Shown piece after piece: positions 4,165 to 34,164 of a DNA stretch of 39,092 nucleotides (positions are counted from its first letter, which is position 1; each line of letters starts with the position of its first letter). Origin of the DNA: Octopus bimaculoides (taxonomy: Eukaryota); assembly GCF_001194135.2 (NCBI RefSeq), contig NC_068990.1, positions 4,112,187 through 4,151,278 of the forward strand, written 5' to 3'. The notes under the pieces are model-generated. The model searched no databases and had not been told where the DNA came from. It saw only the letters and a list, made by a program, of their open reading frames with translations. The translations under genes were made by a program, and so were the position numbers.

Positions 4165-4558
4165 AAATGAGATCGTTGCCAGTGCCCCTGGACTGGCTCT
4201 TGTGCGAGTGGCACATAAGATGTACCATCTTGAGCGTGACCATTGCCAGTACGGCCTGACTGGACTTTGTAGGGTTTTCAAGCGAGATCGTTGCCAGTGC
4301 CCCTGGACTGGCTCTTGTGCGGGTGGCACATAAAAGACACCATTTCGAGCGTGGCCGTTTTCGTGTGGGTGACACATAAAAGCACCCACTACACTCTCTG
4401 AGTGGTTGGCGTTAGGAAGGGCATCCAGCTGTAGAAACTCTGCCAAATTAGATTGGAGCCTGGTGTTGCCATCCGGTTTCACCAGTCCTCAGTCAAATCA
4501 TCCAACCCATGCTAGCATGGAAAGCGGACGTTAAACAATGATGATGATGATGATGATA
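4165..4558 (+). mobile_element. 5'-truncated RTE 3'UTR / (GAT)n-tailed repeat with an internal ~50-bp duplication; other copies 6062-6300(-), 7090-7230(+), 15150-15265(+), 15270-15430(-), 18045-18525(-), 25040-25365(-), 29130-29180(-)
   Basis: Shared CCAGCTGTAGAAAC..CCAACCCATGCCAGCATGGAAA..GACGTTAAAC(GAT)n sequence, also found directly after the RTE ORF at 28020-28470. Boundaries are approximate. Confidence 0.8.
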
Positions 4559-5832: not shown

Positions 5833-7231
5833 TGACTCTTTCCATCTTTAGTTATTGACAGTTTTACGAGTCTTTCCATAGGACATTAGCATAGATCCAA
5901 TTACCTAAATGTAAACACGCAAAGTATAACGTAAATGCTCAACCAACTCATGTTCTTTTTTAATCATAGACATAGATATCAAAATATTACATCCAACATG
6001 GTCTTAAATTTATCCAATAACAAAGGCACACAAAGCTGATTCAGCATTGAGCAACAAGAGTTGAGATGGGTGGAATCATCATTATCACTTAACATCCATT
6101 TTTCCATGCTGGCATGGGTTGGACAGTTTGACCAGAGCTGGTCATGCCAGGAGCCGCAACAGGCTTCATTGTCTGTTCTGGCATGGTTTCTATGGTTAGA
6201 TGCCCTTCTTAACACCAACCATTCCATAGAGTGTGCTGGATGCTTTTAACATGGCACCAACACAAGTGTCGTTTTATGTGGCACCAACATCAGTATCACT
6301 TCTGCTGTGGCGGATGGGTCGTCTTGAGTACAATGTGTCCATAAATGTGTTCATAAATCTTGTCTTTGAACGTGACTGTGTGGTAAGAAGCTTGCTTCCC
6401 AACCACATGTTCCCAGGTTCAGTCCCGCTGCATGGCGCCTTGGGCAAGTGTCTTCTACTATAGCCTCAGGCCAACCAAAGATCAAAGCTTTGTGAGTAGA
6501 TTTGGTAGACAGAAACTGAAAGAAGCCTGTAATATATGTGTGTGTGTGTGTGTGTCTGTATGTGTGTGTGTGTGTGTGTGTGTGCGTGTGTGTGTGTTTA
6601 TGTTTGTGTTTTTCTCCCTCACCATTGCTTGATAACTGATGTTTGTGTGTTTACATCCCCATAGCTTAGTTCAGCAGAAGGAACCAATAGAATAAGCACC
6701 AGGCTTACAAAGAATAAATCCAGGGGTCAATTTCTTTGACCAAATGGCAGTGCTCCAGCATGGCTGAAACAAGTAAAAGAATAAAAGCATGTGTTTATTG
6801 TTCCGTGAGATATTTTGACTCTTCATGAGAAGCCTGGTGTATGAAACATTAAAGCAATCTTGAAACTCCTTCATAGTCCAAGTTTCAGCTCCATAATTAG
6901 GAATGTTCTCTATACGTGTCTTGAAAAATACGTACCTTGTTGACTTTTAAATATTTGCCAAATGTTATGAAGCTTGTTATGGGTAACCAGGCTTATAATT
7001 GCATATCAGGGTGTTAATGCTGCTACCCTTGATGGAAAGGATTGGCTTGCAAAAGCTCTATGATGGTTCCATGTAAATAGTACTCATGCCAGACTGGAAC
7101 CTGGTGCAGCTCACCTGCCAGTTCTGGTCAAACCATCCAATCCATGCCAGCATGGAAAATGGATGTTAAAAGAGGATGATGATGGTGATGATGGTGGTGG
7201 TGGTGGTGGTGATGATGATGAGGAGGAGGAG

Positions 7232-7457
7232 NNNNNNNNNNNNNNNNNNNNNNNNNNNNNNNNNNNNNNNNNNNNNNNNNNNNNNNNNNNNNNNNNNNNN
7301 NNNNNNNNNNNNNNNNNNNNNNNNNNNNNNNNNNNNNNNNNNNNNNNNNNNNNNNNNNNNNNNNNNNNNNNNNNNNNNNNNNNNNNNNNNNNNNNNNNNN
7401 NNNNNNNNNNNNNNNNNNNNNNNNNNNNNNNNNNNNNNNNNNNNNNNNNNNNNNNNN
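7232..7457. other. Assembly gap; others at 16240-16260, 29209-29368, 30639-31204, 31492-31501, 32816-33677 and 35693-36122
   Basis: Runs of N. Confidence 1.
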
Positions 7458-8546: not shown

Positions 8547-8601
<55 letters not shown>

Positions 8602-8608
8602 CATACAT

Positions 8609-8644
<36 letters not shown>

Positions 8645-10615
8645 TTATATATACATACACACAACGAGCTTCTTTCAGTTTCTGTCCACCAAATCCATTC
8701 TCAAGGCTCTGGTCAGCTCAAGGCTTACAGCAGAAGACACTTGCCTGAGATGCCACACAGTGGGACTGAACCCAGAACCATGTGGTTGGGAAGCAAACTT
8801 CTTACCACACAGCCAGCTTCCCCCACCTTACCCCACCAGTGTATCAAGGACTACATTATAAAATCTTACCATCAGGTGTGATTTGAAGGAAACCGTTTCA
8901 TGGTCTCTTTTTTAGTTTTTGGCACTTTATTTTTATCAGTTAGAATATGCTGAAATAAAAGAAATCACAACTTCTGGCACAATAAGCAATTATAAAAAAC
9001 AACAACATGGATATTGTCAAATAATTTTTATTTATACTAAAATAGACAAATTGTTTTGTTATGAAGGACAAAAAAGAAAGAAAATCATTCTGCTATTTAG
9101 AGTCTAAAATGAAGGCTTATATTATTCAAACATTAGTAATTATTTGATGCTTGTGTATATGAAGTTTTGGTGATATAAATTTTCTACAATTTATCAGGTG
9201 TAATTTACTTTAAATATATTCTAAAAAAATATTCATGAATACAAATAACCAGCTATGATATTTAATAACATCACTACTAATATCCAATATTGATAAATAA
9301 TAGCCAAAACTGAAATTATTAGAACATGCACAAGGAAATAACATATTATTGGAATTTCTAATTATGGGAAATATAGGCAAATGGCTATAATATATGCAAT
9401 TTTTTTTCAAATATGAGAAATTATAATTATATTTATTGAAAAAAATATTTTAAACTTTGAAACCTCACTTAAGGTATTCCCAAATTTGAACAAGTTTAAA
9501 ATAAAAAGTTATTTTATTATTTCTGATATCATTTAATTATTCTACAAGTACAACAAAAATATTGAAAATAAGAAAAGAATTTTTTAAAATTATTTTTTAT
9601 TTTACATTAAAAATTCAATCACTTTAATTTTTTTTTTTTATTAATTGGCAAAACAGAAATATTTCCATACACTGAAGCTGAGTAAAACTAAAATAAAATT
9701 AAAATAATAATTAAAGGAATTGAATGACGATATTCCCTAACTGAAATTAATATTAGAATTTGATATATATATATATATTAGTGTACATCTAAATTTCCAA
9801 GCTAATATGGATCGAATGGTTGTTTCATTGGAGTAAATTGTTTTCCCAGCTGGATGGTGCCTTCCTGTGACAATCACGCAATATTGAAACAGGAATGGAA
9901 CTTGGAGAAACCATTTATTCTTTCCTATTCTATTTTGGTAAATTCCTAAACTTCCAAACAACCTGTTTTCCAATGATCATATTTATAATGTTTATGTACA
10001 TGTGTACATTTTGGATTTGAACTACTGGCTAATTGTTATTTCATGCAAGGTTCAAATAAAGAACATTGGAGACATGCATGAAAGAAAGAAGAAAAAAAAA
10101 CGTTAACAAGCCTAACCAGAGCACATGACAAATAAGGATCTGAAGATAAATGGGAATGAAATTATTGGAAATGGGAGCTACCAAATCATAAACAGAATCA
10201 ATATGATTAGGGTATTGAAATATTATCCCCATTAATACTAATAACTGTTTTCAATTTAGGTACAAAATTGGCAGTTTTGAGGGGAGGAATTAGCTAATGC
10301 AATTTACTCCAATACTTGACAGGTATTTTATGTCATCAATCTTGGAGAGATGAAAGATAAAGTTGATTTCAGCAAGATTTTCAGCTTGGAAAATAAAGAG
10401 CCAAGAAGAAAAACTGTTCTTTGCAATACACTAATGATTCTGCCAGCTTGCAACATTTTTTAATGGTAATAATTTATAACATACACACAGGACCACAGAT
10501 TGGGAGTTAGGGGTTAATCGGTTTAAATCTACCCCAATATTTGACTGGGGCTTTATTTTGTTGATCCAAGGGGAATGAAAGGCAAAACTGACCTTGGTGG
10601 GATTTTAACATATTG

Positions 10616-10920
10616 TGGTCTATAGAAAAACATTGTAACTCAGTTACAGTCAAGTGGTCTATAGACAACATTGTAACTCAGTTACAGTCAAGTGGTCTAT
10701 AGACAACATTGTAACTCAGTTACAGTCAAGTGGTCTATAGACAACATTGTAACTCAGTTACAGTCAAGTGGTCTATAGACAACATTGTAACTCAGTTACA
10801 GTCAAGTGGTCTATAGACAACATTGTAACTCAGTTACAGTCAAGTGGTCTATAGACAACATTGTAACTCAGTTACAGTCAAGTGGTCTATAGACAACATT
10901 GTAACTCAGTTACAGTCAAT
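10616..10920. repeat. Minisatellite, 8 x 38 bp (tggtctatagacaacattgtaactcagttacagtcaag)
   Basis: Units start at 10616, 10655, 10693, 10731, 10769, 10807, 10845 and 10883. They are essentially identical, with no spacers. Confidence 0.97.
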
Positions 10921-11357: not shown

Positions 11358-11517
11358 TCATTCTCTGATGGATTTTTTTATTTTTTCCAAAATTCCACGG
11401 AAAAAGTCCTCAATTACTTGTCCAATGCTTTCTGTTCTTTCTTGTAGCCAGTCAGAAAACTGTGTTGCTCTACGAGATAAGCAGCTTCCGGATGTCTTCA
11501 AGACTTTCGACCACATT
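11358..11517 (-). CDS. STC: Stanniocalcin-like gene, terminal coding exon 4 (160 nt including TGA): (K)MWSKVLKTSGSCLSRRATQFSDWLQERTESIGQVIEDFFRGILEKIKKSIRE*
   Basis: Acceptor tttttgattacag|A completes the phase-2 AA to AAA (Lys). The 10th Cys lies 12 residues after the split codon, as for STC1 C170. AATAAA motifs occur on the minus strand about 300 nt downstream (~11042-11058). Confidence 0.85.
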
Positions 11518-12959
11518 CTGTAATCAAAAAGAGAAAAAACACATTTTGAATATAATATCAAAACAAAAGACTGGGAAAATTTGGTATATTTTTAATTCTG
11601 TGTTACATATGTTTCATTACAGAGTCAGAATTACAACTGTATATGCATAGAAAAACATATATAGGGCCTCCTATCTGTAATTCGTCAAAGATTAATAAAT
11701 AAAACAAAATTACACTGGACAAGACTGCAATTTGTAGCATTAAGCATTAATTAGCAGTATATTGAGAGAGAGAAAGAAAACAGAAAGGATGTATATTATA
11801 GCAATTATATTAAAAGAATAAATCGCTAAAACACTCTGTACTGTTATGTACATGCAGTTAGAACCAGTTTTGCCTAGTGTTATGTTGTGAGTTGTGCACA
11901 AGGGTGTAAGAATAGCATTACCCAAATAAATATTTGGATATGGTTATCTAGAATAACCTTTTGCAGAATTAATATGTTCACACAGAATGCACTACCGTAC
12001 TACTCCAAAACGTAGTTATGATATTAAAATAACACAGTAACCAATATGGACGATCAATGCTGTCAACTGTACTGTTGTTAAGTACTGACAGTTCACAGTG
12101 TCTTTATTTTATTGAAATGTGTTGGTCCACTTTCAGTTAAGTGGGGATGGTCAGGATCTTTCCACAACACCTAGGTTTATTAATACCTGAACTAAATACA
12201 TCTCCATATGAACTCATATTTTGGATAAGTTAGTACCAACCTTCACTTTATCCAGGAATGTTGACTCACTCAGAATTGTTACATCCAAGCTATTGATTTT
12301 TATAAAAATACTAAAAGAAAAAAAACTAAGATCTTTGTTACAAGTATGCAAAAAAAAAAAAGCCAAGTGCAGACATGGCTGTATGATAAAAAGTCCATTT
12401 CCCAACCATGTGGTTCCCTGTTCAGTCTCATTGTGTGGCACCTTGGGCAAGTGTCTTCTACAATAGCCTTGAACTGACTGAAACCTTGTGAAAGGATGTA
12501 ACAGACAGAAAGTGAAAGAAGCCGTGTGTGTGTGTGTGTGTGCCTTTGTATTTGACTCCATCACTGCTTGGCAACTGGCGCTGGTTTGTTTACATCCCCA
12601 CGAGTTAGCGATTTAGCAAAAGCGATTGATAGATTAGGTACCAGGTTTTAAAAAAATCTGTGGGGTTGATTTGTTTGGTTAAAACCTTCAAGGCAGTGCT
12701 TTATCATGGACACAGTCTAAGATTGAAACAAATAAAAGCCAGAAGACAAAAGGTGTATATTATAAGCATCTTCTTAGTTCTTTGATTTTAAATTCAAACT
12801 TCTAAACCTAAGATTTGGGTGGAAATGATTATCTTCCTGACAATAATTGGCCACTGGTACACACCACATTTTTTCTTCTTTTTTTTCCCTCACCAATTTA
12901 ACTTAATAAATCTGAATAATTATTTCTTCTAATCAGTAACTTTTTACAATGGTTATTGC

Positions 12960-13255
12960 TGATTGCCAGACCAGGCTGTGCAGTGTTCTTAAGCAAGACA
13001 CTTTATTTCACGTTGCTCCAGTTCATTCAGCTGTAGAAATGAGTTGCGATGTCACTGGTAGCAAGCTGTATCGGCCATTGCCTTTCCCTTGAACATCGGT
13101 GGCGTCAAGAGGGGAGGCTGGTATGTATGGGCAACTGCTGGTCTTCCATAAACAACTTTGTCTGGACTTGTAGCTCAGAGGGTAACTTTCTAGGTGCAAT
13201 CCCATGGTCAGCCATGACTGAAGGGGGTCTTTTTACACACCACAGAAATCAGGTG
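12960..13255 (+). mobile_element. Older SINE with a conserved central domain (GTTCTTAAGCAAGACACTTTATTTCACGTTGCTCCAG); related minus-strand copy at ~14420-14590
   Basis: Reciprocal similarity between the two copies and a V/CORE-like central motif. The exact superfamily was not determined. Confidence 0.6.
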
Positions 13256-14778
13256 ACTGGCCCTATGAATGCTAGGACTCAAGACAATGCTTATTTTTGT
13301 ATTACATTTACCAGAAATATCCATGTCTTTTGCTTCTCAGCCAATGAAGTCTATATGTGGTCACTCTGCTAAAAATAACAATTAAGTCTCCATCAAATCA
13401 CAACTTATCATCTTAAAAAAAAAGTTGAAAGGAAAGCTACATTAAACAGTATTATGCTAAACAAAGAATCAAGAGTTTTAATAACCTAACTAAGTATTGT
13501 GCTCATGATTATAAGGCTATAGGATCAAATCATGGAATGGTTAGCATGTTGCAGCTGTGTGCAAATTATTTCTTCTCATGTTGCCCAGTCTATTTGGCTG
13601 CAAATGAGTACCAAACTAGCACTGGTGCAGCACCTTTTGCCTCCATTTTTCAACTGACTACCTGTGAGTCATAAGACTCGATCAGGGCTTGCCTGGGGCT
13701 ACAAGACAACAACAACAACAGCAACTACATAAACACCAAAAGCAACAACTCCAGCAACATGAAAACTAAAACAGAAGCAATAACAATAACAACCACCACC
13801 ACTACCATCACCACCACCATCATCTACAACAACACATTGTATATGAAAATGTTTGCATACTTAAAAAGAACTTTGCGTGTAAATCTTATTAGAATATATC
13901 AGAAAATATTGCACAACTTATCAAAGTTAATTGACTTTGAAGACATTTATTATCCAGTTTCCAAGTTTTATGGCTAATTTTAACAAAGGTTTTATGTATT
14001 TAAACATTAAAATATGCCAAACATTGAAACAAAAAATATTTGTAGTTGTTGCTGATAAAAACTGATGGATTGTTGTGGGTGGGGAGTTAAATTGCCAGTT
14101 TTAAAGATTAATGAAATACAAAATTCTCTTTAAAATATTGATTTTGTTTTTAATACTGAAGAACCAGAGCACAAAATTAAAAAGCAGAGGCATGTATATA
14201 GTAAACTGAGTCACTGTCTCCTCCCATCTTGCATTGTTTGTGACTAGATAGCAATTATTTCATAAAATGCTGGAGGTGGGGAAATGTGTAGTTAAACCTA
14301 TGTAGGACTTGATCTAGGGATACAGAAAAAAAATAAAGAAAAGATCAAAGGTCCTTCCCAAGCCATAGGTTCATGAAGCCAATTTCCCAGAGTCTGTGGT
14401 GTATATAATGGCTCCCTGATTGGGATGCCAGTCTGCCATAAACTAGTCATTTTTAACTAGCTGAGCAGACTGGAGCATTGTGAAATAAAATGTTTTGCTC
14501 AAGAATACAATGCATTGTCTGGTCCAGGAACTGAAACCACACTCTTATGATCACGAGAGCAACAACCTAACCAATAAGCCATGAGCCTCCACTGGGATAC
14601 AGATAGGGAAGAACTAGAACATGCACACTGGAGCCCTGCGTTTATTTTTTTATTTCCTTTACACATCATCATGCCTTTTTCTTTACTGTTTACAACATTA
14701 TTATTAAATTCTACAAGAGATTAAAAACAAGTTTGGACTGTATTTCTTGACTAAGAAAATACTATACATATAATCTGC

Positions 14779-14816
<38 letters not shown>

Positions 14817-14818
14817 AA

Positions 14819-15082
14819 GATTCCTTGCATGCTAGAAGGAACAGCTAAAGTCCAAACCACTATTAAGGATAAACTTCGAAGGGAATGAAAAATAAGAACA
14901 TTTACCATCTATCTCCTGGACCATGGTTTCAGACTTTTTTTTAGCAAATTTATTTGCTAAAAAAAAGTCTGAAACCATGGTCCAGGAGATAGATGGTAAA
15001 TGTTTTTATTTTTCATTCCCTTTGAAGTTTATCCCTAATAATGGTTTGGATTTTGGCTATTCCTTCTAGCATGCAAGGAATC
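14819..15082. repeat. Near-perfect long palindrome (131-bp arms, 2-nt loop)
   Basis: Position i pairs with 29901-i. There are 7 mismatches, all transitions, and the inner 53 bp are perfect. Confidence 0.95.
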
Positions 15083-15439
15083 CTATGATGGTTACCTCTT
15101 ATGTGTTTAAATGTACACTGTATTTATATGAATAATATATATAATTAAGAGTATCCAGCTGTTGAAACCATGCTTTGGCATGGTTTCTACAATTCTTCGG
15201 CTAATTAGATCCAGTTAGTCCATGCAACCCATGCCAGCAGGAAAGAAAGGCGTTAAATGATTATATATTATCATCATTGTTTAATGTCCGCCTCCTATGG
15301 TGGCATGGGTTGGACAGTTCGACAAGAGCTGGCCAGACAGAAGACTGTGCCAGACTTCTGCATTTGTTTTGGCACAGTTTTTATGGTCGGATGCCTTTCC
15401 TATCACCAACCACCTAGCAGAGTGGTTGGTGTTAAGTTG

Positions 15440-15494
<55 letters not shown>

Positions 15495-15707
15495 TATGCA
15501 TACACATACACTTATATGTGTGTGGTTGTGTTTGCAAGTATGAAATTGCATACTGATTGTAAACAAACATGACTGTCATACAAGTGGTATCATCTGTTTC
15601 CAACATTCCATGGAAACATATTCCAATATTCCATGGAAACATTGTGCTGCTCATGTTTGAAAAAAAAAAAGGAAGAAGAAAGGAAAAAAAAACAGTATTA
15701 ACTTTAA

Positions 15708-16160
15708 TACAAGTAGAAAGATCTGTTTTTTCAATGCGTAAATACTGATAGAACAGCATATATAGGATAAAATCCTTACAGAGCAGAAAAATCTCTCAGC
15801 AACCAGCCACTTGTACTAGAATACATTTCAGCGCTTCAAAAACAAACTTAGATTTGTTTATATATGATGTAATTTCCATTCCATCTAGCATTTCTAGATG
15901 AGTCTATAAATTCTAAATGGCAGAAGAATTTGTCAGTAAAACAGTTTAGCTTAAATGGTAAAGCACTTAGACTGGAAATTGATGGGATGTGAGTTCGTGT
16001 CTCATCGCTGGTGGCCGACAAACTTTTTCTGCTCTAAAATGATTTTATCCCATATATGCTGTTCTATCAGTATTTATGCATTGAAAAAATAGATCTTTCT
16101 ACTTGTACTACAATACATTTCAGCACTTCAAAATCAAACTTTGTTTACATATGACGTAGT
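15708..16160. repeat. Combined inverted (15708-15807 / 16007-16107) and direct (15809-15870 / 16101-16158) repeat with a tRNA-like head at ~15947-16010
   Basis: Direct reading of the sequence. A-box-like TAGCTTAAATGG at 15947 and B-box-like GAGTTCGTGTC at 15991. Confidence 0.75.
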
Positions 16161-16794
16161 ATTAACTTTAATTGGAAATATATAAAAATTGTTAACATGG
16201 AGGGTATCAGGATATAGAGAATCTACCCCCCCCCCCCCCNNNNNNNNNNNNNNNNNNNNNCCACTGAATTTCAGTTGACCCATGCGAGCACAGAAAAGTG
16301 AATATTATGATGATATAAAAGGTATGGTTATGTGGTTAAGAAGTTCCCTTTTGAACCGTAGGGTTTTAATTTTAGTCCCACTGTATTGCACCTTGAGTGA
16401 ATGTTTTTGCATGTCTGTGTGCATGCTTGTTGTGCATGCACATGTGTATGTCTTTGTATTGATACCATTCAGCATAGTGAAAGAGTGTGGCAATAGCTCT
16501 CTGTGGTTCAAGTGAAGCTGAATAAAGCATCATACTTGAATACAAATCAGAATTAGCATCAGGGAAGGAATCCAATCATAAAATCCTGCCTCAACAAGTT
16601 TCATTTAACCCATACCAACATGGAAAAAAAATGGGATGTAAAAATGTTGATGATATATATATATGTATCCATAGCACACGTATATGCAGATGTATCATTA
16701 AAACATGAGGTTAAAGGTCTATAGGTCACATAAACTGATCTATCAATTGATTTAATCATGTCAGAGACAGAAATATTTAAATATAGTGACTTAC

Positions 16795-17021
16795 TTCTGT
16801 GATGCAGCTGATCCTGGCCCCAAATCTGTGGCGTCAAATATATCCCATATTGCATCTCGGTTATCCCAGTTTATGTCACAGAAATTATTTTCTATGAAGC
16901 AGCGATGCATGGCATCGAAGCCTGCATCAGAGATTGACTTACAAGATTGAGATGATGACTGGTACAGTGGGTTCAGCGCTTCACTTTGGCACCTTAAGGT
17001 GGAATTTGCCCAAACTCTTCC
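16795..17021 (-). CDS. STC: Stanniocalcin-like gene, coding exon 3 (227 nt; phase 0 in, phase 2 out): GRVWANSTLRCQSEALNPLYQSSSQSCKSISDAGFDAMHRCFIENNFCDINWDNRDAIWDIFDATDLGPGSAASQ(K)
   Basis: Acceptor tttttcacag|GGA and donor AA|gtaagt. Cys spacing 23,15,13,6 is identical to human STC1 C74-C98-C114-C128-C135 (recalled sequence). GRVWANSTLRC aligns with GKAFVKESLKC. N-glycosylation sequon NST. Confidence 0.9.
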
Positions 17022-17514
17022 CTGTGAAAAATTACAAATGGAAAAAGATATTTTACAGTGGTGGTTACTCAATCATTTTTGATAATGCGCATTCAGTTGT
17101 CTAATCAGCCAAATGACCAACTCATTAAATTACTAAATGGCTGAGTATTTCACAAGCATGTATATTCTTAATAACTGAACTCACTACCTTATGTTGTGAG
17201 CCCAACACTAACCACAGAACCATGCACCTTCACCTTAATACAATTCTCAGACGAAATCAGCTTGGTACAATATGCGATGTTTGAACTGAAAATACAGAGA
17301 ATCAGACCAAATACTGCAAAACATTCTATCTGATACTTTGACTAGCAATTCGTCACTTTCTCTTTTTTTTTGTTTACCTGTTTGCTGCTTGAAAGGTATC
17401 TCGAAGTTATACAATTGAACACTAGTCAGCAGCTGCTCAGCCAATTTTACAACTAACACCTTGACTTGGACTATCAACTATCAATTCCCAAGAGAGAATA
17501 TCTATGCACAATAA

Positions 17515-17857
17515 GTTTGTTGTATCTAGGGAGAGTTATTATGCCAATATAATTGACACACACACTGGTTCAATTCCACTCCTTTATTATGAATCAATTG
17601 GTTGAATATCCAACTAACTAATTTGTTTTGTTTTTGTTTGTCAAAGCTCTTTCATTGCTATACGCCTCTATAATGGACTAAGTCGATAATCATTGAAAAG
17701 GTTGCAAGTAACAACAAAAGACCTTTGACAACAGAAACAAAACAAATTAATTAGTTGGATATTTAGCCAATTGACTATTAATAAAGGAGTGGAATTGAAC
17801 CAGTGTGTGTGTTAATTATACTGGCACAATGACTCTCCCCAGACACAACAAAATTTC
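17515..17857. repeat. Imperfect inverted repeat, ~140-bp arms and ~50-bp spacer
   Basis: cacacacactggttcaattccactcctttatt..ccaactaactaatttgttttg versus the reverse complement at 17740-17815. Confidence 0.85.
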
Positions 17858-18922
17858 TTTCAATATATGATTTCACATAAAGAATCTTGCAAACCAGATA
17901 CAAAAACAATGTACAATAAACCAAGTTTCTATTTAAGGAGAGATCTATTTTCTATACACTCTAGAAACCAGTGATAAATACCAGCTCTGTAGGGATTATT
18001 CTTCTTCAGATCCAGACTGAAGATTTTGCTGTTATATCCTGTCTTAGTCATCACCATCATCATTGTTTAATGTCTGCTCTCCATACTGGCATGGGTTGGA
18101 CGGTTTGACTGAGGACTGGCAAGCCAGGAGGCTGCACCAGGCTCCGATCTGATCTGGCAAGATTTCTACAGCTGGATGCCCTTCCTAATGCCAACCACTC
18201 CGAGAATGTACAGGGTGCTTTTTTATGTGCCACTGGCATGGGAGCCAGTCAGAGACACTGGCATCGACCATGCTCAAATTGTGCTTTTTACGTGCCACCC
18301 ACATAGGAGCCAGTCAAATAGCATAGGCATCAGCCATGCTCGAATGGTGCTTTTTATGTGCCAGTCAGGTGGCACTGGCATCGGCCATGTCTATGATTTC
18401 ACTTGGCTCAACAGGTCTTCCCATGCACAGCATAGTGCCCGACGGTTGAAGGGGTACACTTAAATGGGCCAGTTATGTAACACTGGCATCAGCCACAGCT
18501 ACGATCTCACTTGGCTTGCCTCACAGCACATAGGGGTGCCAATACTAAGTGGATGGAATAAGGGATGTTTGATGGTGCGGGACAGCAGATTCAAAACGAT
18601 GATACAGTAGACAGGAAGATGCACTACTTATTGGTATTCATACTTTATAGAGAATTATTTCTCAACAAACAAATCTTCACTGGAACTTCTATAACAAGGA
18701 TGAGGAAACTGTTTTTCGTTTAAAAATTTTCATTTTATTAAATTAGCAAGACTGATTCAATATATTTCATCTCCTCCATATCAGCAAACTGTTATATTTG
18801 CTAAGTTTTAATAAAGTTTGATAATATATTAGGATTTATAATAAATTTTTAATAAATCTGCAAATGTGTATATTTACAGTCAACATGTATGACAGTAAAA
18901 GGGTAGTGAGGGGCCAGTTAAA

Positions 18923-18961
<39 letters not shown>

Positions 18962-19040
18962 TATAGATACATACATACATACACACACATATATATACAC
19001 GCACACATACATATACACACATCCATACACACACACACAC

Positions 19041-19095
<55 letters not shown>

Positions 19096-20469
19096 CACAC
19101 ACATATATATATATATAATCTTTGCACATCATGTTACATAAATTGGAGGTTCTGGCATTATCATTTGAAGCTTTAATTGGTTGTCACTTAGAAATAATTC
19201 ATTATTTGAGAGCTGAAGCATGCCTTCATTTGTTTCAATTATGAAAAATATTGAAACTATTGAAAATACTAAAGGAGATCAAATGTCTGAGATGAATTAT
19301 TGTTAATATGGTTATAAATACTTGAGACCATTAACCTCATTTTTAGAGATGAGCCATTTTCTGTTATCTTTTTATTTTTTATAATTGTTTTGTTTCGTTT
19401 CAGTCATTGGATTGTGGCCTTGCTGAGCCACTACCTTGACGTGTGTAGTTGAACAAATCAGCCCTAGTACTTATCTTTTAAGTCTGGTACTTATTCTATC
19501 AGTTTTGTTTGATTGAACTGCTAAGTTACAGGGACATAAAGAAACCAAAACTTGTCAAGTGATATTGGAGACAGACAACACAATGATATACAATTGCACA
19601 TATTCGATGGGCTTTTTTCAGTGACCATCAACCAAATCCACACACAAGACTTTGGTTGACTCAGGGCTACAGTAAAAGATACTTGCCCAAGGTGTCATGC
19701 AGTGGGATTGAACCCAGAGCCATGTGGTGAGGAAATAAACTTCTTACAACTATGTTTTCATCAGTCTGACCTTTAATCATCATTAGGTTTCCTTTAATTG
19801 GACATTTTCAGATTCTATTCAAAATAAGTATTTTTAAACTAAAGGCAGTAAATCTATCCATTATCTCATTGATACACGTACATTGTAAGCATCAAGAAAT
19901 AAGATAAAGACTAAACTTCCTGTTTAAAAGTGATCGAAATTAAAACCTCCCATCATATTTTCAGGTATTTGTTCCAAATACAAGATTATGAAATTATGGA
20001 GGAGGGCGGGTGTCAATTACATTGACCCCAGTTACTCAACTGGTAATTATTTCATCAACCCTGAAAGGATGAATGCCAAAGTTGACCTCAGTGGAATTTG
20101 AACCCAGAATGTAAAGCCAGAAGAAATGCTGCAAAGCATTTTGTCTGGCATGCTAAAGATTCTACCAGTTCATTGCCTTAAAATACAAGAATGATAATGA
20201 TGAAGCTATTTCATTAAATTCTTCATTATTTTCAAATTTAATTGAAAAGCAGGCAGTGTATTTCAAAAAATATATCTGTTATTAATAAACAACTAATGTC
20301 TATAAGTTGATTGACTCCTCAACAACAAGAATAAGAACTATATCCACTTTTGTAAACTAAGGAAACCTCCATGCATTCACCTGCCCTCTTGGATATAGCA
20401 GCCAAATTCTTAAATTTCTCTCCCCCCACCAAAAAAATCATCTCAAAACAAAAAAATTATTTAAATAAA

Positions 20470-20619
20470 AGCGTGGCTGTGTGGTAAGAAGCTTGCTTCC
20501 CAACCACATGGTTCCAGGTTCAGTCCCACTGCGTGGCACCTGGGCAAGTGTCTTCTACTATAGCCTCAGGCTAACCAAAGTCGTGTGAGTGGATTTGGTA
20601 GACGGAAACTGAAAGAAGT

Positions 20620-20684
<65 letters not shown>

Positions 20685-20890
20685 TTGTGTGTCTGTGTTT
20701 GTCCCCCTGTCATCGCTTGACAACTGATGTTGGTCCATTTACGTCCCTGTAACTTAGCAATTCGGCAAAAGAGACCGATAGAATAAGTACTAGGCTTACA
20801 AAGAATAAGTCCTGGGGTCGATATGTTCGACTACAGGCAGTGCTCCAGAATGGTCGCAGTCAAATGACTGAAACCAGTAAAAGAAAAAAA
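20470..20890 (+). mobile_element. tRNA-headed SINE, family A, with internal microsatellite; other copies 2732-2847(+), 6372-6787(+), 7690-7830(-), 8373-8818(-), 12373-12745(+), 16322-16400(+), 19385-19750(-), 23160-23460 (fragments), 29385-29775(+)
   Basis: Head GGCTGTGTGGTAAG..GGTTCAGTCCC (A/B-box-like), CORE-like TGGCACCTTGGGCAAGTGTCTT segment, and tail ..GAAACAAGTAAAAGA repeated about 10 times in the window. Confidence 0.85.
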
Positions 20891-21418
20891 GAACAGATTG
20901 ACAAGGTAGTCCTTGATATATAAAACAAATAGGATCATTATGTAGATCAATTTTTAATTAAACTGCTTGACTAAGGCTGACCTATGGCTAAAAGAAAAAA
21001 AAAACAATTTGTTACAAACATGGGAACTTCCACAAGCCACTGTGTGAGCCTTTACATGGTCAAGCATCATACTGGTAATAGTAGTAAAATCTCTTTAAAA
21101 GAAGAACACACTGAACAATGCAATCCTGGATCAAAGCTCCATTAGGGATGACCTTGGGTTAAACAACAATGTGAACTGCTCCTGTAATAATCTTAAATAA
21201 ATGCTGTATATTTGCAGTTTGGTACAAAACAGAGGTGACATGTATGGACTTCAGACTTACTAGTCTCTAGATCTGAGTAAATATGTATATATCTATTGTT
21301 TAATGTGTGTATACAGCATTACATAACATTTTTACACTCTTTTGCAGCATTAAATATTCGAAGTTTTATGATCATGGTGTTTAGTGTCTGCTAGAAAATT
21401 TTAATACCAACACCTTGT

Positions 21419-21450
<32 letters not shown>

Positions 21451-21951
21451 ATACATACACATGTTTACATTGAGACAAACATTGTACACACACAACCACA
21501 TTTATGATATTCCCTCTGTCTCGCTGCCTCTTTCTCATCACACACAGCCAGATAGATATGCAGATTTACAGAGAGGTGAGATTTGGCAGAGTCATTAGAG
21601 TGTTAGATAGAATGCCTTGCAGTACTTGAGTTCAAATCCTGTTGAGGTCAACTTCACTTTTTATCCTTTCAGTTTCAATAAATAACGAATCAATCCAGAA
21701 CTAGGGTCAATTGCTTTCGTTCTCTTTTTCTCTTTTCTCTCTGGAAGAAATTGGCTGAGGTCAGAACTGGAGAAGGATGAGCTCCATCAGGTTTAGATGC
21801 TCATGGCATGCTGTAAGTCAAAATGACAGAGCTACAACCCTTCTCTAACCCCAGATTTAGATGTCATGGCCCCCATCAGGAGTTGAGGTCTGAAGGTAAA
21901 GCAGATACATAAGCATATTTACATACATACACACAAACATATATCTATCTA

Positions 21952-22004
<53 letters not shown>

Positions 22005-24273
22005 TCACATACAGGTATGCACATTTCAATAGATATATGCACCAGAGAGAAAGAAACAAACAGATAGATACATATATACATATTCGCAGATACTGTCTAG
22101 GTCTTACATATATAGTCATACTTACAGAAATACATACAGTTACACACACAGAAATCTATCTATCTATATATATATATATAAACACATATACAGATACAGT
22201 TACATATGTATACATAGGCACACACATAAAAAACACGCAGTTACATACATACAGATATACTTGTTTTCATACACATCTAGATAGTTATAGATTCATTTAT
22301 ATAGACAACTACACACACACATATAAAGTAAACTTCTGGACTAAATGCCTTAGAGACACACATGTATGTCTAATGTTATAAACTGCTGAACAAATGTTAT
22401 GTTTTCATCAAGCAACTTCTTGTGATGTTAGCACACTTAACTGGTACATGCCAAACCAACATAAACTTCACATACATGAATATCTCCCAATTATAGAGCG
22501 AAAGCTTTTAAAAGCAAATTATTTTCCAATATTCTCCATACTTGGAATTCATAGAAATTATTATATACCACTTAGCTATTAAATGATGATGATGATGATG
22601 ATCATCATCATCGTTTAAACATTGCTTTCGCATGAAATCTATTCTACTGTTTACAGAAAATAAATAAATAAAACTAAAATTTAAATGACCTAATTAAAGT
22701 CTATTAATAGGTGCTTAAATAATCCATCTAAAAAAAGCTCCCCCCTCCATCTCCACCATACCCAAATCAAAACAAACATTTAGATCAAATTTGACTAGCC
22801 AGTTTTTTTTTTTTTTAGTCTCTTAAAAATTTGTCTGATTTGAATACTTTCAATTAAGATTTAAATTCATTTTCAGTTTGTGATATTTCTTAATTGTGTC
22901 TTATTGATGTGTGTGTATGTATGTGTGTGTGTGTGCGTGTGCGCATATATATACATATATAACACACACACACATATATATATACAGGCACATATAAACA
23001 CACACTTATATACATCTGTATGCATACATATACATACAAATGTATGTAAAATATCCACACATATACAAATGTATGCATATATATGTAGTGGATGGGGTCA
23101 GCATAAGAATACAGCTAATGGCGCAGTAGTGTAAAAGTGGAAGAATTTGTCTTTTCCCATTCTTTTGGTTTCCTGCATTCCAGTTTCAGTTACTGGACTA
23201 TGGCCATTCTGGGGCACTGTCTTCAATGGTTACTAGCTATATGCATCAACTCCCCTTCTCCAGTAGCCTGTCTGGTACATTTCTTATTCTAGTAAAGAGA
23301 GAAAGAAAGTAAAAAACCCCCAAAAAACTGACTTTGGTGTGAAGGGGTATGGCATGAAACATAATACCCAAGTGTACTTTTGCTTGATGCACTGATTTCT
23401 CAGTGGTTCTGGGTTCAGTCCCACTGTGTGGCAACTTAGGCAACTGTCTTCTATTATATCCCTGTTGCAGCAAAAAAAAAAAAAAAAAACTAAGAAAAAG
23501 GAATATTTTGATACATATACATAAATTGATGAATAATAAAAAGTACATTTCAACAGGATTGAGACATGTTTAATGGCTTGACTGTGTCCAATGTAGATGT
23601 AGTCAAACTTTTTCATTTATTTACTGACAATTCCAATATAAATGTTATGAAACTAGAATATTTCAACCCATATAAATTGTATCTTTTCTTAAATATTTCA
23701 CTCTAAATAATACTGTGTGACTTAATTTTTGCTAATATTAGTTTTAAGCATTCAAACATCATCATCACTATTTTTCTAAATCCTGAAGCATTCTACACAG
23801 AATTTTTGATGTTCCAAAGTCATCTTGGTGTATAAGTCAACTAATATTTTTGGCTTTAAATTTTGATCTGAAAAATTTGAATTGTATGCTGGAAAATAGG
23901 GTACGTAGGGTAAACAGGGTAAAGAATTCACACACAAACACATTTTATTTCATACATACACACACATACATATACACATTGTAACACATGCATATATATA
24001 CAGGAAGACATGCAAGCAAACCAAAGTAGTTTCTACAAGGCTAGTCAACCTGCTGGAAATAATAACCAAATCACTCAAATCAGATACTGCTGTCCTTGAT
24101 ATATGCAAAAAGACTGGATGGTCATGAATGGCTACAACACATTGATATAGCATTACTCTACCAGGGCTGGTCTGGCATTAAACAACAACAATACTAACAA
24201 CATCGACAAAAAGCAGAAAAATGTATCAAAAAGAAAATGAAAAAGGATAGAAAAACATTTGAGTTTTACTGAC

Positions 24274-24434
24274 TGCAGCGTTTAAACTGTTAATTTTATT
24301 CCGCATCCTCATGCAATAATAGAGTCCAAACCGTATTGCAAAGCCTTCGCTGCCACAGGGATAGCGGTCATTGATACAAGTGTAGTAAGTACAGTCACCT
24401 GTTGCACTTTTTAACAGACATTTGCTGTCGATAC
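24274..24434 (-). CDS. STC: Stanniocalcin-like gene, coding exon 2 (161 nt; phase 1 in, phase 0 out): (G)IDSKCLLKSATGDCTYYTCINDRYPCGSEGFAIRFGLYYCMRMRNKINSLNAA
   Basis: Minus-strand acceptor tttgttttag|GT and donor GCA|gtcagt. Open frame with 5 Cys spaced 8,4,6,13. The phase-0 end joins the next exon in frame. Confidence 0.88.
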
Positions 24435-26964
24435 CTAAAACAAAATAAACAAATTGAGAAGTCAGTTTTATAATCACTGATTTTTGACACAGGCACAAGA
24501 CAAAAAAGAAAAAATATTGGGAGGAGGGTACAGTTAATCCTTTGACTGTAATTAAATTTTGTGATCAATCCTGTAAGAATGTTAATTATCCACCAAAAAA
24601 ATAGAACTGATATTTTCTGCTACTGCAATACTCTTTCAGTGTTTCCTGTAGGTATGGTCTGAATTACTACCACTAAAAGTATTTGATTCTTGCTCTGTAA
24701 AGAGATATTTGATGAAATATGTGAAAAAATGTAAGAAAATCTGAAAAATTGTATTCTGCAAGAAGTGTACCTAAGAATGTGCTCAAAACTGTAGAGCAAA
24801 ACTGCTTTCCACAGTTAACAGTAATAATATTTTTGAGTGGATTTGAAATGCCAAGCTGGCAAAATGATTAGAATGCCAGACAAAATGCTAAGCAGCTCTG
24901 AGTTCAAATTCCTTCCAGGGTTGATATAATGAGTACCAGTTGAGCACTGGGGTCAATGAGTGCAACAATGCTATCCATGCAGTTAGCATCAGCTGCACCA
25001 ATACCTTTCAAATTATAAACTCATTCACAATAAACATCTTTCATCATCATCGTCATCATTTAATGCGTCTTTCATGGTTTAGGTTGGATGGTTTGAGAGG
25101 AGCCAGCCAGGTAGAAGACTACACCAGGCTACTGTTTTTGCATGATTTTATGGCTGGATACCCTTCCTAACACCAGCCACTCCAAAAAGCGGACTCAGTG
25201 CTTTTTATGTGGCACCAGCATAAACGAGGCCAGTTTTGGCATGGTTTTTTACAGTTGGATGCCCTTCTAAATGCCAACTATCTTACAGTGTGGACTGGAT
25301 GCTTTTTATGTGGCACCAGCACTGGTAGGGTCACCAAGTAACTTGCAAGACAAGGAATTTTGAGAGGGGATGGGGCATTAAAGGAGGTGATCTATACCTG
25401 TCTTGTTACTTAATTTCAATTTGGACATCATTATGTACTGAGATATATTAATAAACCAAAACGTTGGTAAGTTGAAGGAGATTGTTGAAGACCTATTCGA
25501 GGAGTGCAAAACCACAAACCGTCTTTGACAGTGAACAGTAGTAGCATCTGTTACATTTCCATCTACATGTTAGGCATATATATTCGGTGAAGTGGGTTGA
25601 TGACAGTACAAGCACTTGATGTCATTTCAAATAAGAGTGTTTCTCTCACATGGCTTACTGCTGCAAAATTTGAAAACTTTGAATGAAGCTATAAGATGTA
25701 TATTTTTGAAAATTTTAAATTATCTCTGCAATACCCTGTACCTAGAAAATTATAACAAGAGAACAGCTTTTTCTAGTGTTGCTATGCATTGTTACTTCAG
25801 TCTAATTCACCCCAGAAAGCTCACATAATTCTATTATTTACAAAAATTCTTTTAGTCTTAAAGCAAAATTTTGATAACTTACTATTGATATTCTTTAATG
25901 TAGTTTTATTACACCCAGTTTCAAATTGTAAACGTTTTCTTTTTAGATTTTCTTTTGTATTCAATATTTCAGATATCATTTCATCAATGTTTTCTCTTTC
26001 CAGTCTTACATTTACATACCAGATATCATCTTTTAAAGTCTTTCTTTGAACGTAGATCAATTGATATCAGTTTTCTTGAAGCGCTCATGGAGTACAGCTA
26101 CCTCATATACATAGTTATTGTTTTATAATTTATCCATCATCTTGCATAAGAGATCGACTGTCAGAAGAAACAGTAAATAAACGGAAATGTTCAAATTGAA
26201 ATTTTTCAAAACTGCAGCGAAGACATAATTGTGTTGCAGAAAAGTATTTCAGAGAAAGTTGTTAAGGGCTGCAGAAAGATAACAGATCAACTTCAGATAA
26301 CGTCAAAACATAAGTGTGCCAACAGCTAAACCTAGCCAGTGACCAGAAATACTGGAAACTCATCAAACTAGAAAATTTGTCACTTGTGAAACCATCCAAA
26401 ATTATCAATGGAAGAAATCAAAGAAAGCTAGAATTTTAGATTTTAAGGCAAGTGCTGGAGATTCTTCATATTATGATCATAAACTAAATAGACTGAAATA
26501 CAAATGGAAATCGGAACAGAATACAATAGTAATATGAACAATATAAATGTTTCTTAACAAACAAACAATCATACTTCAAATATGAAGTATATTTAATGTT
26601 TTTTTTTTTGTTTTTGTTTTTCCATGCTAGCATGGGTTTCAGTAATATATTATTGTGGCAATGTTTTAGAGCTGGTTGAATATTTCTTCTACATCATCTG
26701 GTTACTCCAGCCTCACGGCAATGGGCCACAGTCTGTACTACATTGACTTGTATGCCAGCAAATACAGCATGCAGAGTTTCTTTTATGACTGTATACAAGC
26801 TAGTTGATGATGTACTGTTTAAACATTGATAATATTGCTTGATCCAGTAATACTATACTGGATCAAACAATAAATTATCATTAAATAAGATTAAAATGTC
26901 TACAGGTATCTGATTTGATTTAACACATATTTATGTGCTTACAAAACTGAGTAATGACCATGTA

Positions 26965-27175
26965 CAATGGAGTGCTGAAAAGTCTCTGGCTTTAAGGGTA
27001 TCATGAGAAAGGTCTGGTTGGAGGACCAACCTTCCCAGTTCTTTTACAAAACTTAGAAAAACTGAAGGACCAGTGCAATGAGTGTGTGAATCTGAGATGT
27101 TGTATAAAATCCTAATCAACTGATCCTCCTGTATTTTCGTTTACCCAAAGCCAGGAACTTTTCAGCACACCCTCA
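26965..27175. mobile_element. Tc1/mariner-type MITE
   Basis: ~28-bp imperfect TIRs (gtgctgaaaagtctctggcttt and aaagccaggaacttttcagcac) flanked by TA at 26963-64 and 27176-77. Confidence 0.8.
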
Positions 27176-27559
27176 TAAGTCATTTATTGTTTAATGTACA
27201 AATATATACTCTCTATAATATACAGAAAGGTCTTTTCTTGTGATATGTTTCAGGTTCTGTGTCACTCTACAGCACTTTGGGCCTGTGTCATCTATAACAA
27301 TAGCCTAGGTTAACTTGAGAGTGAATTCGGTAGAAAGGATCTTTAGGAAGCTTGTCATGAGTGTGTGTCTCCAGCATCAGTAATGCTTCACCCACTGGGC
27401 TCATAATGCTTATATTTACAATGCCCCAAACACTTTCATATGCAATACTTCCTTGCTGCCCCACCCCCTACCCAGTAGAGGTAACAACCTTAATAACTTT
27501 AACATGTTTGAATGATAGTTGGTTAAAAGCAAGAACAACTATTATGATGCCTGTTACCA

Positions 27560-28470
27560 AAAGTTCATGGGAATACTGAATAACATCTCTCCTTCCTGTG
27601 TTACCTCCCATATCTCTTTCCCAGTTTTCAGAGTTGGCATTTCTAAATGTAGGCATATTGAAAAGTAGGTCTAGTGAGATTGTAGAGATACTTGAACAGA
27701 GATGTACTGATGTATGTTGTGTACAAGAGGTAAGATGGAGAGGAGCTTCAGCCAGAGTCCTCACAGGCAAAGCATATAGGTATAAACTATGGTCATGTGT
27801 TATGCATGAATGAAGAGAACTATGTGAGGAAGTGCCACTCCCTAACTGTAGAAGGAACGTGTGGAAGAGGTAGACCTAGGAAGACATGGGATGAGATGAT
27901 GAAGCATGACCTACAAACATTGGGCCTCACAGAGGCAATGATGGGAGACCAGGACCTTTGGAGATATGCTGTGATTGGGAAGACTCGGCAACTAAGTGAG
28001 ATCACAGCTACGCATGTCAGGCCCTGTTAAGAATACCCCTGATGTGTCGGGCGATATGATATGCTTGAGAAGACCTGTTGAATCAAGTAAAACCAACATC
28101 GTAGCTGTGGCCAGTGACCCCTGATTGGCTCCCATGCTGGTGGCACATAAAAACCACCAACTGATCGTGGCTGATGCCAGTACTCTCCGACTGGCTCTTG
28201 TGCTGGTGGCACATAAAAAGCACCATCCGAACATGATCAATGCCAGGCTCGCCTGCTTGGCGACCATGCCAGTGGCACATAAAACACACCCACTACACTC
28301 TTGGAGTGGTTGGCGTGAGGAAGGGCATCCAGCTGTAGAAACATTGCCAGATCAGATTGGAGCCTGGTGCAGCCACTGGCTCTCCAGACCTCAGTCAAAC
28401 CGTCCAACCCATGCCAGCATGGAAAACAGACGTTAAACGATGAAGATGATGATGATGATGATGATGATGA
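27560..28470 (+). mobile_element. Internally deleted RTE-clade LINE: AP endonuclease N-terminus fused to ORF C-terminus, 3'UTR and (GAT)n tail
   Basis: LNVGILKSRSSEIVEILEQRCTDVCCVQEVRWRGASAR..YKL abuts YGHVLCMNEE..VEGTCGRGRPRKTWDE..DLWR at ~27787-27790. The 3'UTR follows and ends in (GAT)n at ~28440-28470. Confidence 0.85.
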
Positions 28471-30217
28471 GAACATTATATGAGAAAGAAAGAGAGAGAG
28501 TTAGACACACACATACACTAAATATACATGTTTGTAGACAGATATATATATGCTGATATAGACAAATACATATACAGACAAGTGAGACAGGGTAGCAGAA
28601 ATAATAGATTGAAGGACTAAATGATTGATACAGAGATCAAAAGATGGTTGGTGAAACTAAATATCAGTTATGTGCATGGGTGAATTCAACTGACTACTTG
28701 CCATTATAACTTGATAGAATACCTGAACACGATATTTTTGAATGTAGAAAAATGAACATTTAAATACATCAAAACGTCTACCACTTTTCTTTAATCTATT
28801 AATTTCATGATTATTACAAAGAAAATTGAACTTGAAATAAATTGTTTTTTTTTCTTCATTTTTGCTGTGATGGTTGAAAATATGAAGAAAAACAATGCAA
28901 GTGAGAGATGTCATGCCATTTAGCCCAACTTCTCACAGTTCATGTCAGTTAAATCTTCTCCTGACATGACTTGGTTTTTAACATGCTATTGCTAGCAATT
29001 TCAATTCAAAGACAGAAAATAGCTTACAACAACACCATTATCTCTCTCTCTTTCAAAACAAAATGAAATATATATACATGTGTATGTGCGTGTATATATA
29101 TATATATATTTATATATATAAAATCTTCAACTTTTAATGTCTGTTGTCCATGCTGGCATGGTTTGGACAGTTTGACGAAGGCTGGCAAGCTGAAATTATA
29201 TATATATANNNNNNNNNNNNNNNNNNNNNNNNNNNNNNNNNNNNNNNNNNNNNNNNNNNNNNNNNNNNNNNNNNNNNNNNNNNNNNNNNNNNNNNNNNNN
29301 NNNNNNNNNNNNNNNNNNNNNNNNNNNNNNNNNNNNNNNNNNNNNNNNNNNNNNNNNNNNNNNNNNNNTATATATTAGACTAGTAAAGTTGTGTGCTAAG
29401 AAGCCTTCTTCCCAACCACAAGTTCCAGGTACAGTCCCATATTGTGACGCCTAGGGCAAGATTTTCTCTACTATAGTCCAAGACTAACCAAAGCCTTGTG
29501 AGTAGGTTTGATAGAAAGAAGCCCATTGTATGCATGTATGTGTGTGTGCTTGTGCACATGCATTTGTTTGTCCCCCCACCATCACCTCCATTTGATAAAT
29601 GGTGTTTGTTTGTTTATGTCCCCATAACTAGCAATTCAGCAAAAGGGACCAACAGAATAAGTATCAGTTTTATAAAAAAAAAACAATAAGTATTGCGGGG
29701 GTCAATTTGTACAACTAAACCCTTCAAGGTGGTGCTCCAGCATGGTCACAGTTCAATGACTGAAACAAATGAAAGATGAAATTGTAAAAAATTTCATTAA
29801 AAAAAAATATTAATTTTTCTGAAAGTTATGAAGAAACAAAGTCAGTAGTGGGGCACACTCATGTAAGTATGCCCCGGATTCATATATCTCACCACCCCTA
29901 GATTCTAGGCTCCACCTCCTCCTTTCCAAAAATTAAAAAGAAAAAAACTTAAATGAATTTTGTTAAATTTTTTCCCATCAACTAAAACAATCTTTGCTCC
30001 TCTGAATAAGGAAGCTGTACACTACCATGCATTCAAGTCCATAAAATGCAGCACCCTCTCTTTCTTTAAGTATCCGTGATGTGTCTCACCACCAAAACTG
30101 TTATTAAGCACCTTTTTAATCTTCACTCATCAGAAATGTTATACTACACCCATTAACTACACACATTTTCTCTCCAGACTCCAACTGACACGTGTTCAAG
30201 TTGAACATCCATCTTAC

Positions 30218-33677: not shown

Positions 33678-33730
<53 letters not shown>

Positions 33731-34164
33731 AACCATTTCCTTTCTTATAAAGAATGGAGCTTCGTGATATGGCTGTTCCAAAACTCCATCATATTATTTG
33801 TAAGACATTTGACAAACTGTGGAACAAAATTGAAATGTAAGACACACGTTATATGTAACCGTGTGAAATATAGCGTCTAAGTGGGAGTCAGGTATAAAGG
33901 AAGATGCACTCATGTGAAGTATATTTGGAAATATAATTAATTGCTGAAATTATACTTTATAATTTTGGCACAGGTCAGCAATTTTGGGAAGTGGGTAGTG
34001 GATTAAATTGATTCCAGTGTTCAAACGTACTTATTTTATCGATTCCGTGAAGATGAAAGGCAAAGTCTACTACTGCGTGATTTGAACTCAGAACGTAAAG
34101 AACTAGTAGAAAGACTGCTGCGACTGGAATCCAGGTAAAAAAGTCACATATTATGCCATCATAT

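Follow-up and report, generated by a model that had tools for sequence, protein, structure and literature searches.

A stanniocalcin-family gene of Octopus bimaculoides shares three intron positions with vertebrate STC1

Introduction

In vertebrate stanniocalcins (STCs) a core of ten Cys residues forms five disulfides. STC homologs with a ten-Cys pattern were reported from molluscs and other protostomes in 2011 (Roch and Sherwood, 2011; PMC5654410). According to the same study, the segment from Cys4 to Cys5 contains an additional hydrophobic stretch in the protostome STCs and in STCc of amphioxus, but not in STCa/b or in the tunicate and vertebrate STCs (PMC5654410). Gastropod homologs carry the name "Stanniocalcin" in UniRef, and a stanniocalcin of Octopus bimaculoides is explicitly described in a preprint from 2026 (10.64898/2026.02.02.703354). 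Here we analyze a 39,092-nucleotide (nt) stretch of the O. bimaculoides genome, referred to as the window (NC_068990.1, positions 4,112,187–4,151,278). It very probably holds coding exons 2–4 of the gene LOC106869053, which encodes a predicted secreted stanniocalcin-family protein of 217 amino acids (aa); this is the best explanation of the locus as a whole, including the mode of action inferred below.

Compared in blocks between the runs of N, the window matches chromosome CM046610.1 of assembly GCA_001194135.2 at 100% identity, and window position p corresponds there to approximately 4,112,186+p. An initial annotation of the window had presented the gene as unannotated. The same exons are, however, already part of RefSeq LOC106869053 in the O. 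bimaculoides assembly, and the 181 aa encoded in the window are identical to residues 37–217 of XP_014770049.1 (UniProt A0A0L8HRP4). This RefSeq model, isoform X1, has the exon boundaries first proposed but is named "uncharacterized protein." The protein database also lists a precomputed PF03298 match for the full-length protein. Only a functional name is missing from the annotation, and the uncharacterized protein can now be given that of its family. With the Cys4–Cys5 insertion and the mollusc STCs known since 2011, the UniRef names and the preprint, the novelty of the gene had also been overstated.

Gene Structure

All coordinates are positions in the window, and the exons are read on the minus strand. 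Coding exon 2 (24434–24274, 161 nt, acceptor ...TTTTAG, donor GTCAGT) is entered in phase 1 and left in phase 0. It codes for Cys1–Cys5 with the longer, protostome-type Cys3–Cys4 and Cys4–Cys5 loops, and its counterpart is the 143-nt exon 2 of vertebrate STC1. Coding exon 3 (17021–16795, 227 nt, acceptor ...TCACAG, donor GTAAGT) runs from phase 0 to phase 2, begins with a Gly that is invariant in the family and codes for Cys6–Cys9 and an NST sequon; in vertebrate STC1 its equivalent is the 212-nt exon 3. The coding part of exon 4 (11517–11358, 160 nt including the stop codon TGA at 11360–11358, acceptor ...TTACAG) contributes Cys10 and a helical C-terminal tail (EDFFRGI) that is conserved in cephalopods. 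Each of the three exons is preceded by a polypyrimidine-AG acceptor, and exons 2 and 3 both end at GT donors.

Spliced together, exons 2–4 give a single open frame of 181 aa with incoming phases 1/0/2, whose ten Cys residues are spaced 8,4,6,13,23,15,13,6,39. The exons, canonical splice sites, phases and Cys spacing of the initial annotation were thereby reproduced. Its remark that no single open reading frame (ORF) reveals the gene also holds, as no ORF of at least 110 aa among those of the window covers any of the three exons.

Exons 2–4 make up only part of the gene. The full gene has four coding exons, all on the minus strand, and its 217-aa product contains exactly ten Cys residues. Coding exon 1 (106 nt) encodes the putative signal peptide and lies approximately 7.6 kb past the upper end of the window, at window-equivalent positions of about 46712–46817 and beyond a 1.2-kb assembly gap. 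It codes for MWIILSMLLFSVTFTESFFFTKEKNPDEIEKTAQK and the first base of Gly36. Neither tblastn with a word size of 2 nor fuzzy six-frame matching found this exon (residues 1–35) inside the window. The N-terminus of the annotated full-length protein is MWIILSMLLFSVTFTES..., with a hydrophobic core that looks typical by eye.

The 3′ part of intron 1 (24435–39092, phase 1) runs past the end of the window. Its total length of ≈22 kb is an estimate only, because the upper end of the window adjoins the 1.2-kb gap in the source record. Intron 2 (17022–24273, 7252 nt, phase 0) has many interspersed and AT/microsatellite repeats, and intron 3 (11518–16794, phase 2) holds an assembly gap. Both are less than half as long as their counterparts in O. 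sinensis and O. vulgaris, with 7.3 vs. 17.4 kb for intron 2 (≈17.4 kb in O. sinensis) and 5.3 vs. 12.4 kb for intron 3.

RefSeq isoform X2 (XP_052826976.1) uses an alternative first coding exon on the same strand (25979–25883, 97 nt), which starts with an ATG at 25979 and ends in phase 1 with an A followed by the donor GTAAGT. Its 32 encoded residues, MISEILNTKENLKRKRLQFETGCNKTTLKNIN, are followed by the first base of a Ser codon and include no hydrophobic signal sequence. A protein with a ten-Cys secretory fold but no signal sequence would be odd, and this start is therefore of doubtful significance; it may be spurious or the start of a non-coding transcript. A database look-up recorded no gene with exactly the isoform X2 product.

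Membership of the Stanniocalcin Family

The 181-aa product matches PF03298 over residues 4–119 with 32.7 bits (E 6.1e-8), where the gathering cut-off of the Pfam family is 23 bits. All 15 invertebrate relatives tested match the same family. A single-sequence phmmer search of the PDB returned human STC2 chains (E 2.7e-4). A PDB search with a profile that contained vertebrate STC1 was discarded as circular and redone with invertebrate sequences only. The resulting profile of 15 sequences matched STC2 alone, with an E value of 7.5e-15 and an alignment running from before Cys1 to past Cys10.

The fold points the same way. An AlphaFold model built from a 28-sequence alignment had a predicted local distance difference test score (pLDDT) of 86.3 and a predicted template modeling score (pTM) of 0.79, and it superseded an earlier model from six cephalopod sequences. 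In a Foldseek search of the PDB with the 28-sequence model, STC2 chains took the first four places, each with a probability of 1.00, and the next match had an E value of 3.5. The best of the STC2 matches (E 5.5e-4) had template modeling (TM) scores of 0.59/0.62 and a root-mean-square deviation (RMSD) of 5.5 Å over 162 columns. All ten Cys residues are invariant in the 28 aligned family members.

By Pfam, profile-to-PDB and fold search LOC106869053 is thus a genuine stanniocalcin-family gene, and the homology first proposed from Cys spacing and exon sizes is borne out. The family itself is large: in an exhaustive HMMER search of 1.84 billion representatives, 1132 relatives passed E ≤1e-3, of which 175 also passed E ≤1e-10.

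Intron Positions Across Bilaterians

For comparison of the exon–intron structures, exon boundaries were placed by exact spliced translation in genomic loci. Coding exons 1–3 measure 118/143/212 nt in STC1 of Nannospalax galili, which is 97% identical to the human STC1 sequence, and 115/143/212 nt in STC1 of the spotted gar. Both genes have phases 1/0/2. The exon sizes, phases and Cys spacing given for human STC1 in the initial annotation hold in these two species other than human, apart from the 115 nt of exon 1 in the gar. The O. sinensis and O. vulgaris orthologs of the window gene have coding exons of 106/161/227 nt and again phases 1/0/2, and so have two paralogs in O. sinensis, LOC118767950 and LOC115224535. 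In Aplysia californica exon 2 is 161 nt, and the three shared introns have phases 1/0/2. Exon 1 of the Aplysia locus (KB941667.1) was not recovered in the range analyzed and the locus has assembly gaps, so that only introns 1–3 and one extra intron could be placed. This extra phase-1 intron splits exon 3 in codon D131, between Cys8 and Cys9; it contains an assembly gap and has no counterpart in the octopus and vertebrate genes.

When aligned with MAFFT, all six genes compared, namely the octopus gene, the two paralogs, the Aplysia gene and STC1 of Nannospalax and gar, have the three introns in identical columns (56/110/185) and phases. Intron 1 interrupts a codon located five residues ahead of Cys1, intron 2 is found ten residues ahead of Cys6 and directly before the family-invariant Gly, and intron 3 interrupts a codon twelve residues ahead of Cys10. 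The differences in exon size agree exactly with the differences in Cys spacing, as had been suggested from exon lengths alone. In the 161-nt exon, the Cys3–Cys4 and Cys4–Cys5 loops are longer by +1 and +5 residues, which makes up its six additional codons. In the 227-nt exon, the five additional codons correspond to the +5 residues between Cys9 and intron 3, which account for the Cys9–Cys10 difference.

Since all three introns share position and phase, the parsimonious reading is that the four-exon structure was already present in the bilaterian ancestor, before the split of protostomes and deuterostomes, as the initial annotation had proposed. Four conserved exons have reportedly been noted by Roch and Sherwood in 2010 for the tunicate and amphioxus genes as well. 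The checked coordinates show that all three stanniocalcin introns are common in position and phase to molluscs and vertebrates. Such sharing provides direct evidence of true homology for the divergent "STC-like" proteins of protostomes (≈15% identity to STC1) and of a four-exon gene dating back to the bilaterian ancestor. In the literature searched we found no prior report of a mapping of STC intron positions between protostomes and vertebrates. The mapping appears to be the only addition made here and a modest, expected one, given that ancestral introns are known to persist in molluscs and that the deep origin of the family was published in 2011. We therefore regard the result as useful, but it opens no new question.

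Conservation of a Working Gene

Compared with the O. sinensis and O. vulgaris orthologs, the 546 coding nt in the window show 15 differences, of which 14 are synonymous. The single non-synonymous one concerns residue 190 of the full protein (Q/R). Between these species the 300-nt flanks of each exon are mostly ≈70–91% identical, with one of them aligning at only ≈59%. Protein identity is 92% in Argonauta and ≈70% in three other cephalopod sequences. The latter are uninterrupted 214-aa ORFs on cDNA-like contigs of ≈1 kb from three sequencing runs (SRR8281680, SRR29271475, and SRR27666063), which represent spliced transcripts and have no indel at the junction positions. LOC106869053 is under strong purifying selection.

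These data also bear on whether the spliced frame could be a chance arrangement or the remains of a decaying pseudogene. Nothing points that way beyond the absence of a single long ORF. With the Pfam match, exon boundaries that are identical to the gene models in three Octopus genomes, the 14:1 ratio of synonymous to non-synonymous differences and orthologs on transcript-like contigs, we consider this explanation refuted.

Type of Stanniocalcin

The spacing 8,4,6,13,23,15,13,6 of the first nine Cys residues was found in all molluscs examined, i.e., octopods, other cephalopods, Aplysia, Lymnaea, and two chiton genes. By contrast, the spacing in STC1 proteins of four vertebrates is 8,4,5,8,23,15,13,6,34,31, where the last interval runs from Cys10 to an 11th Cys. 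This residue, which forms the homodimer disulfide in vertebrates, is absent from the octopus protein. The octopus Cys4–Cys5 interval (GSEGFAIRFGLYY) is partly hydrophobic and has 13 residues, as in every mollusc examined, vs. 8 in vertebrates. At the vertebrate glycosylation site between Cys3 and Cys4 (CLENSTC) the octopus protein has CINDRYPC, and its sole N-glycosylation sequon is the NST five residues before Cys6. In the phmmer alignment with the STC2 structure 8a7d, Cys120 of STC2 (...RFGCISRKC) stands against a Ser of the octopus protein (...LYQSSSQSC).

To judge from its sequence, LOC106869053 belongs to the known type comprising the protostome STCs and amphioxus STCc, and is a homolog of STC1 and STC2 rather than a demonstrated one-to-one ortholog of either. 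This type might even be a separate ancient paralog lineage, "STCc/protostome type," in which case function may not transfer from STC1 and STC2. Amphioxus has both the vertebrate-like STCa/b and the protostome-like STCc (PMC5654410), outside the cephalopods the cephalopod profile finds its best matches in amphioxus proteins (168–174 bits), and the Cys3–Cys4/Cys4–Cys5 spacing is 6/13 in all the molluscs as opposed to 5/8 in vertebrates. Roch and Sherwood, however, interpreted the pattern as a transition inside a single family (PMC5654410), and the three common introns, while they show common descent, do not tell orthology and ancient paralogy apart. A separate lineage is, in our view, a real possibility, though the balance is somewhat against it.

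The top non-cephalopod matches deserve a comment of their own. They are gene models of Branchiostoma lanceolatum and B. floridae in which a tandem pair of stanniocalcin-like domains is joined to lysozyme-g, phospholipase-A2-like and Cys-rich modules. These could be mis-merged neighboring genes or real multidomain secreted proteins.

Proposed Function

The structural model predicts that the ten-Cys stanniocalcin core of the product adopts an all-helical fold like that of human STC2. We suggest that the signal peptide encoded by exon 1, outside the window, would be cleaved and the protein secreted. The secreted form would be a monomer, helical and locked by disulfides, and probably N-glycosylated at the NST before Cys6. 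Outside the cell it might then exert its effect through non-covalent binding to another protein. Going by STC1 and STC2, this partner would most likely be a pappalysin-type metalloproteinase, or else a regulator of ion transport; this is the weakest step of the proposal. To our knowledge pappalysins, which are inhibited by STC1 and STC2, are the only mechanistically understood partners of the stanniocalcin family. Pappalysin homologs have been reported in Lophotrochozoa (PMC11925022). The literature searched contained no functional data on mollusc STCs.

Several points weigh against the overall explanation. The authors who reported the lophotrochozoan pappalysins judge an interaction between STC and pappalysin in invertebrates to be unlikely, on account of the low conservation outside the cysteines (PMC11925022). 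Identity of the octopus protein to vertebrate STC1 is only ≈15%. The 28-sequence alignment behind the AlphaFold model included vertebrate STC1 sequences, while the cephalopod-only model was weak (pLDDT 67), although STC2 was still its top Foldseek match (E 0.05–0.1). Finally, the signal peptide (M + WIILSMLLFSVTF) has been judged by eye only and is encoded outside the window.

A role other than that of an endogenous hormone can also be envisaged, in which the protein mainly serves as a venom "doppelganger" from the posterior salivary gland that is secreted into the prey and mimics or disturbs its stanniocalcin signaling. Stanniocalcin-like proteins (superfamily SF5) are reported to be among the highly expressed secreted products of this gland in O. 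bimaculoides and Hapalochlaena maculosa, and the same preprint overlays an O. bimaculoides stanniocalcin on human STC2 (10.64898/2026.02.02.703354). The protein in question may, however, correspond to one of the two tandem paralogs seen in O. sinensis (LOC118767950 and LOC115224535) rather than to LOC106869053. These two genes are in the same orientation, ≈30 kb apart on O. sinensis CM016883.1 (≈23.77–23.88 Mb), and are far more diverged, with 26–30% identity. The high conservation of LOC106869053, seen both in Argonauta and the other cephalopod transcripts and in the predominance of synonymous differences, is not usual for toxins under diversifying selection. A salivary main role for LOC106869053 is therefore unlikely, and we infer that its strong conservation fits an endogenous role better.

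The two functions could nevertheless meet in one gene family. Octopods would then have a slowly evolving single-copy stanniocalcin (LOC106869053) next to a fast-diverging tandem pair, and one of these lineages, possibly LOC106869053 itself, would have been recruited as a salivary "doppelganger," with all of them keeping the ancestral four-exon structure. This scenario is speculative and on the improbable side, but if true it would make the locus a clean case of an ancient hormone gene recruited to venom. Separately, CAI9741011.1 of O. vulgaris, a 308-aa model with a low-complexity E/G/K tail, seems to represent the tandem pair in merged or extended form.

Assembly Gaps and Repeats

The gap in intron 3 (16240–16260, 21 N) sits 535 nt past the donor site of exon 3, in a run that is poly-C on the plus strand and poly-G on the gene strand. 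Because of its position inside the intron the reading frame is unaffected. On the gene strand the gap is flanked by ...GAAATTCAGTGG and poly-G...TAGATTCTC. In O. sinensis and O. vulgaris these flanks are contiguous, as ...GAAATTCAGT-GGGGG-TAGAATCTC, both in MAFFT alignments and in blastn alignments that cross the gap. The five G residues of these two species thus stand against G14-N21-GG in the window in the MAFFT alignment. The gap is a homopolymer read-through problem that hides little or no sequence.

Six more gaps are present at 7232–7457, 29209–29368, 30639–31204, 31492–31501, 32816–33677 and 35693–36122, five of them in intron 1 and one downstream of the gene. A near-perfect tandem array with eight copies of a 38-nt unit (10615–10919, 99% matches) lies ≈440 nt past the stop codon, probably in the 3′ untranslated region or flank. 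Interspersed repeat families of ≈150–440 bp and 64–85% identity occur in both orientations throughout the introns and flanks, for example at 4292–4557, 6371–6787, 8597–8819, 12373–12554, 18048–18470, 20472–20891, 28020–28459 and 29390–29776. Long AT, TG, and ATAC microsatellites are likewise found in introns and flanks. An Rfam scan of the window gave no matches.

Comparison with Known Stanniocalcins

Human STC2, an inhibitor of PAPP-A, is the only solved structure matched (PDB 7y5q, 8a7d, 8a7e, and 8hgh), by profile as well as by fold (TM ≈0.6), and both proteins are helical bundles. The RMSD between STC2 and the octopus model nevertheless indicates considerable divergence. Cys120, which makes the covalent bond of STC2 to PAPP-A, is replaced by Ser in the octopus protein, and the C-terminal Cys used by STC2 for dimerization is absent.

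Vertebrate STC1 resembles the octopus gene in having four coding exons with the same intron columns and phases, and its Cys spacing is identical in six of nine intervals. The proteins differ in most other respects. At ≈15% sequence identity, three loops are longer in the octopus by +1, +5, and +5 residues, Cys11 of STC1 is missing, and the sequon is NST before Cys6 instead of CLENSTC. The C-terminal tail of the octopus protein is short and unrelated to that of STC1.

The paralogs LOC118767950 and LOC115224535 have the same exon sizes, phases and Cys spacing as the window gene. In contrast, they are only 26–30% identical to it in sequence, lie on a different chromosome and have a diverged Cys4–Cys5 loop and a short C-terminal tail.

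Among the closest relatives are the protostome-type STCs, such as the "Mollusc STC" of Lottia (JGI 165566) and the gastropod entries named "Stanniocalcin" in UniRef (Roch and Sherwood, 2011; PMC5654410). These share with the octopus protein the ten Cys residues in the mollusc-wide spacing, the Cys4–Cys5 stretch, the lack of an 11th Cys, a length of ≈200 aa and the PF03298 match, and a signal peptide, which in the octopus protein is putative. The gastropod members are ≈25–30% identical to the octopus protein and differ from it in the C-terminal helix (EDFFRGI...KIKK), whose conservation is specific to cephalopods. Aplysia differs further by its extra phase-1 intron, yet all three of the other intron positions are common to Aplysia and octopus.

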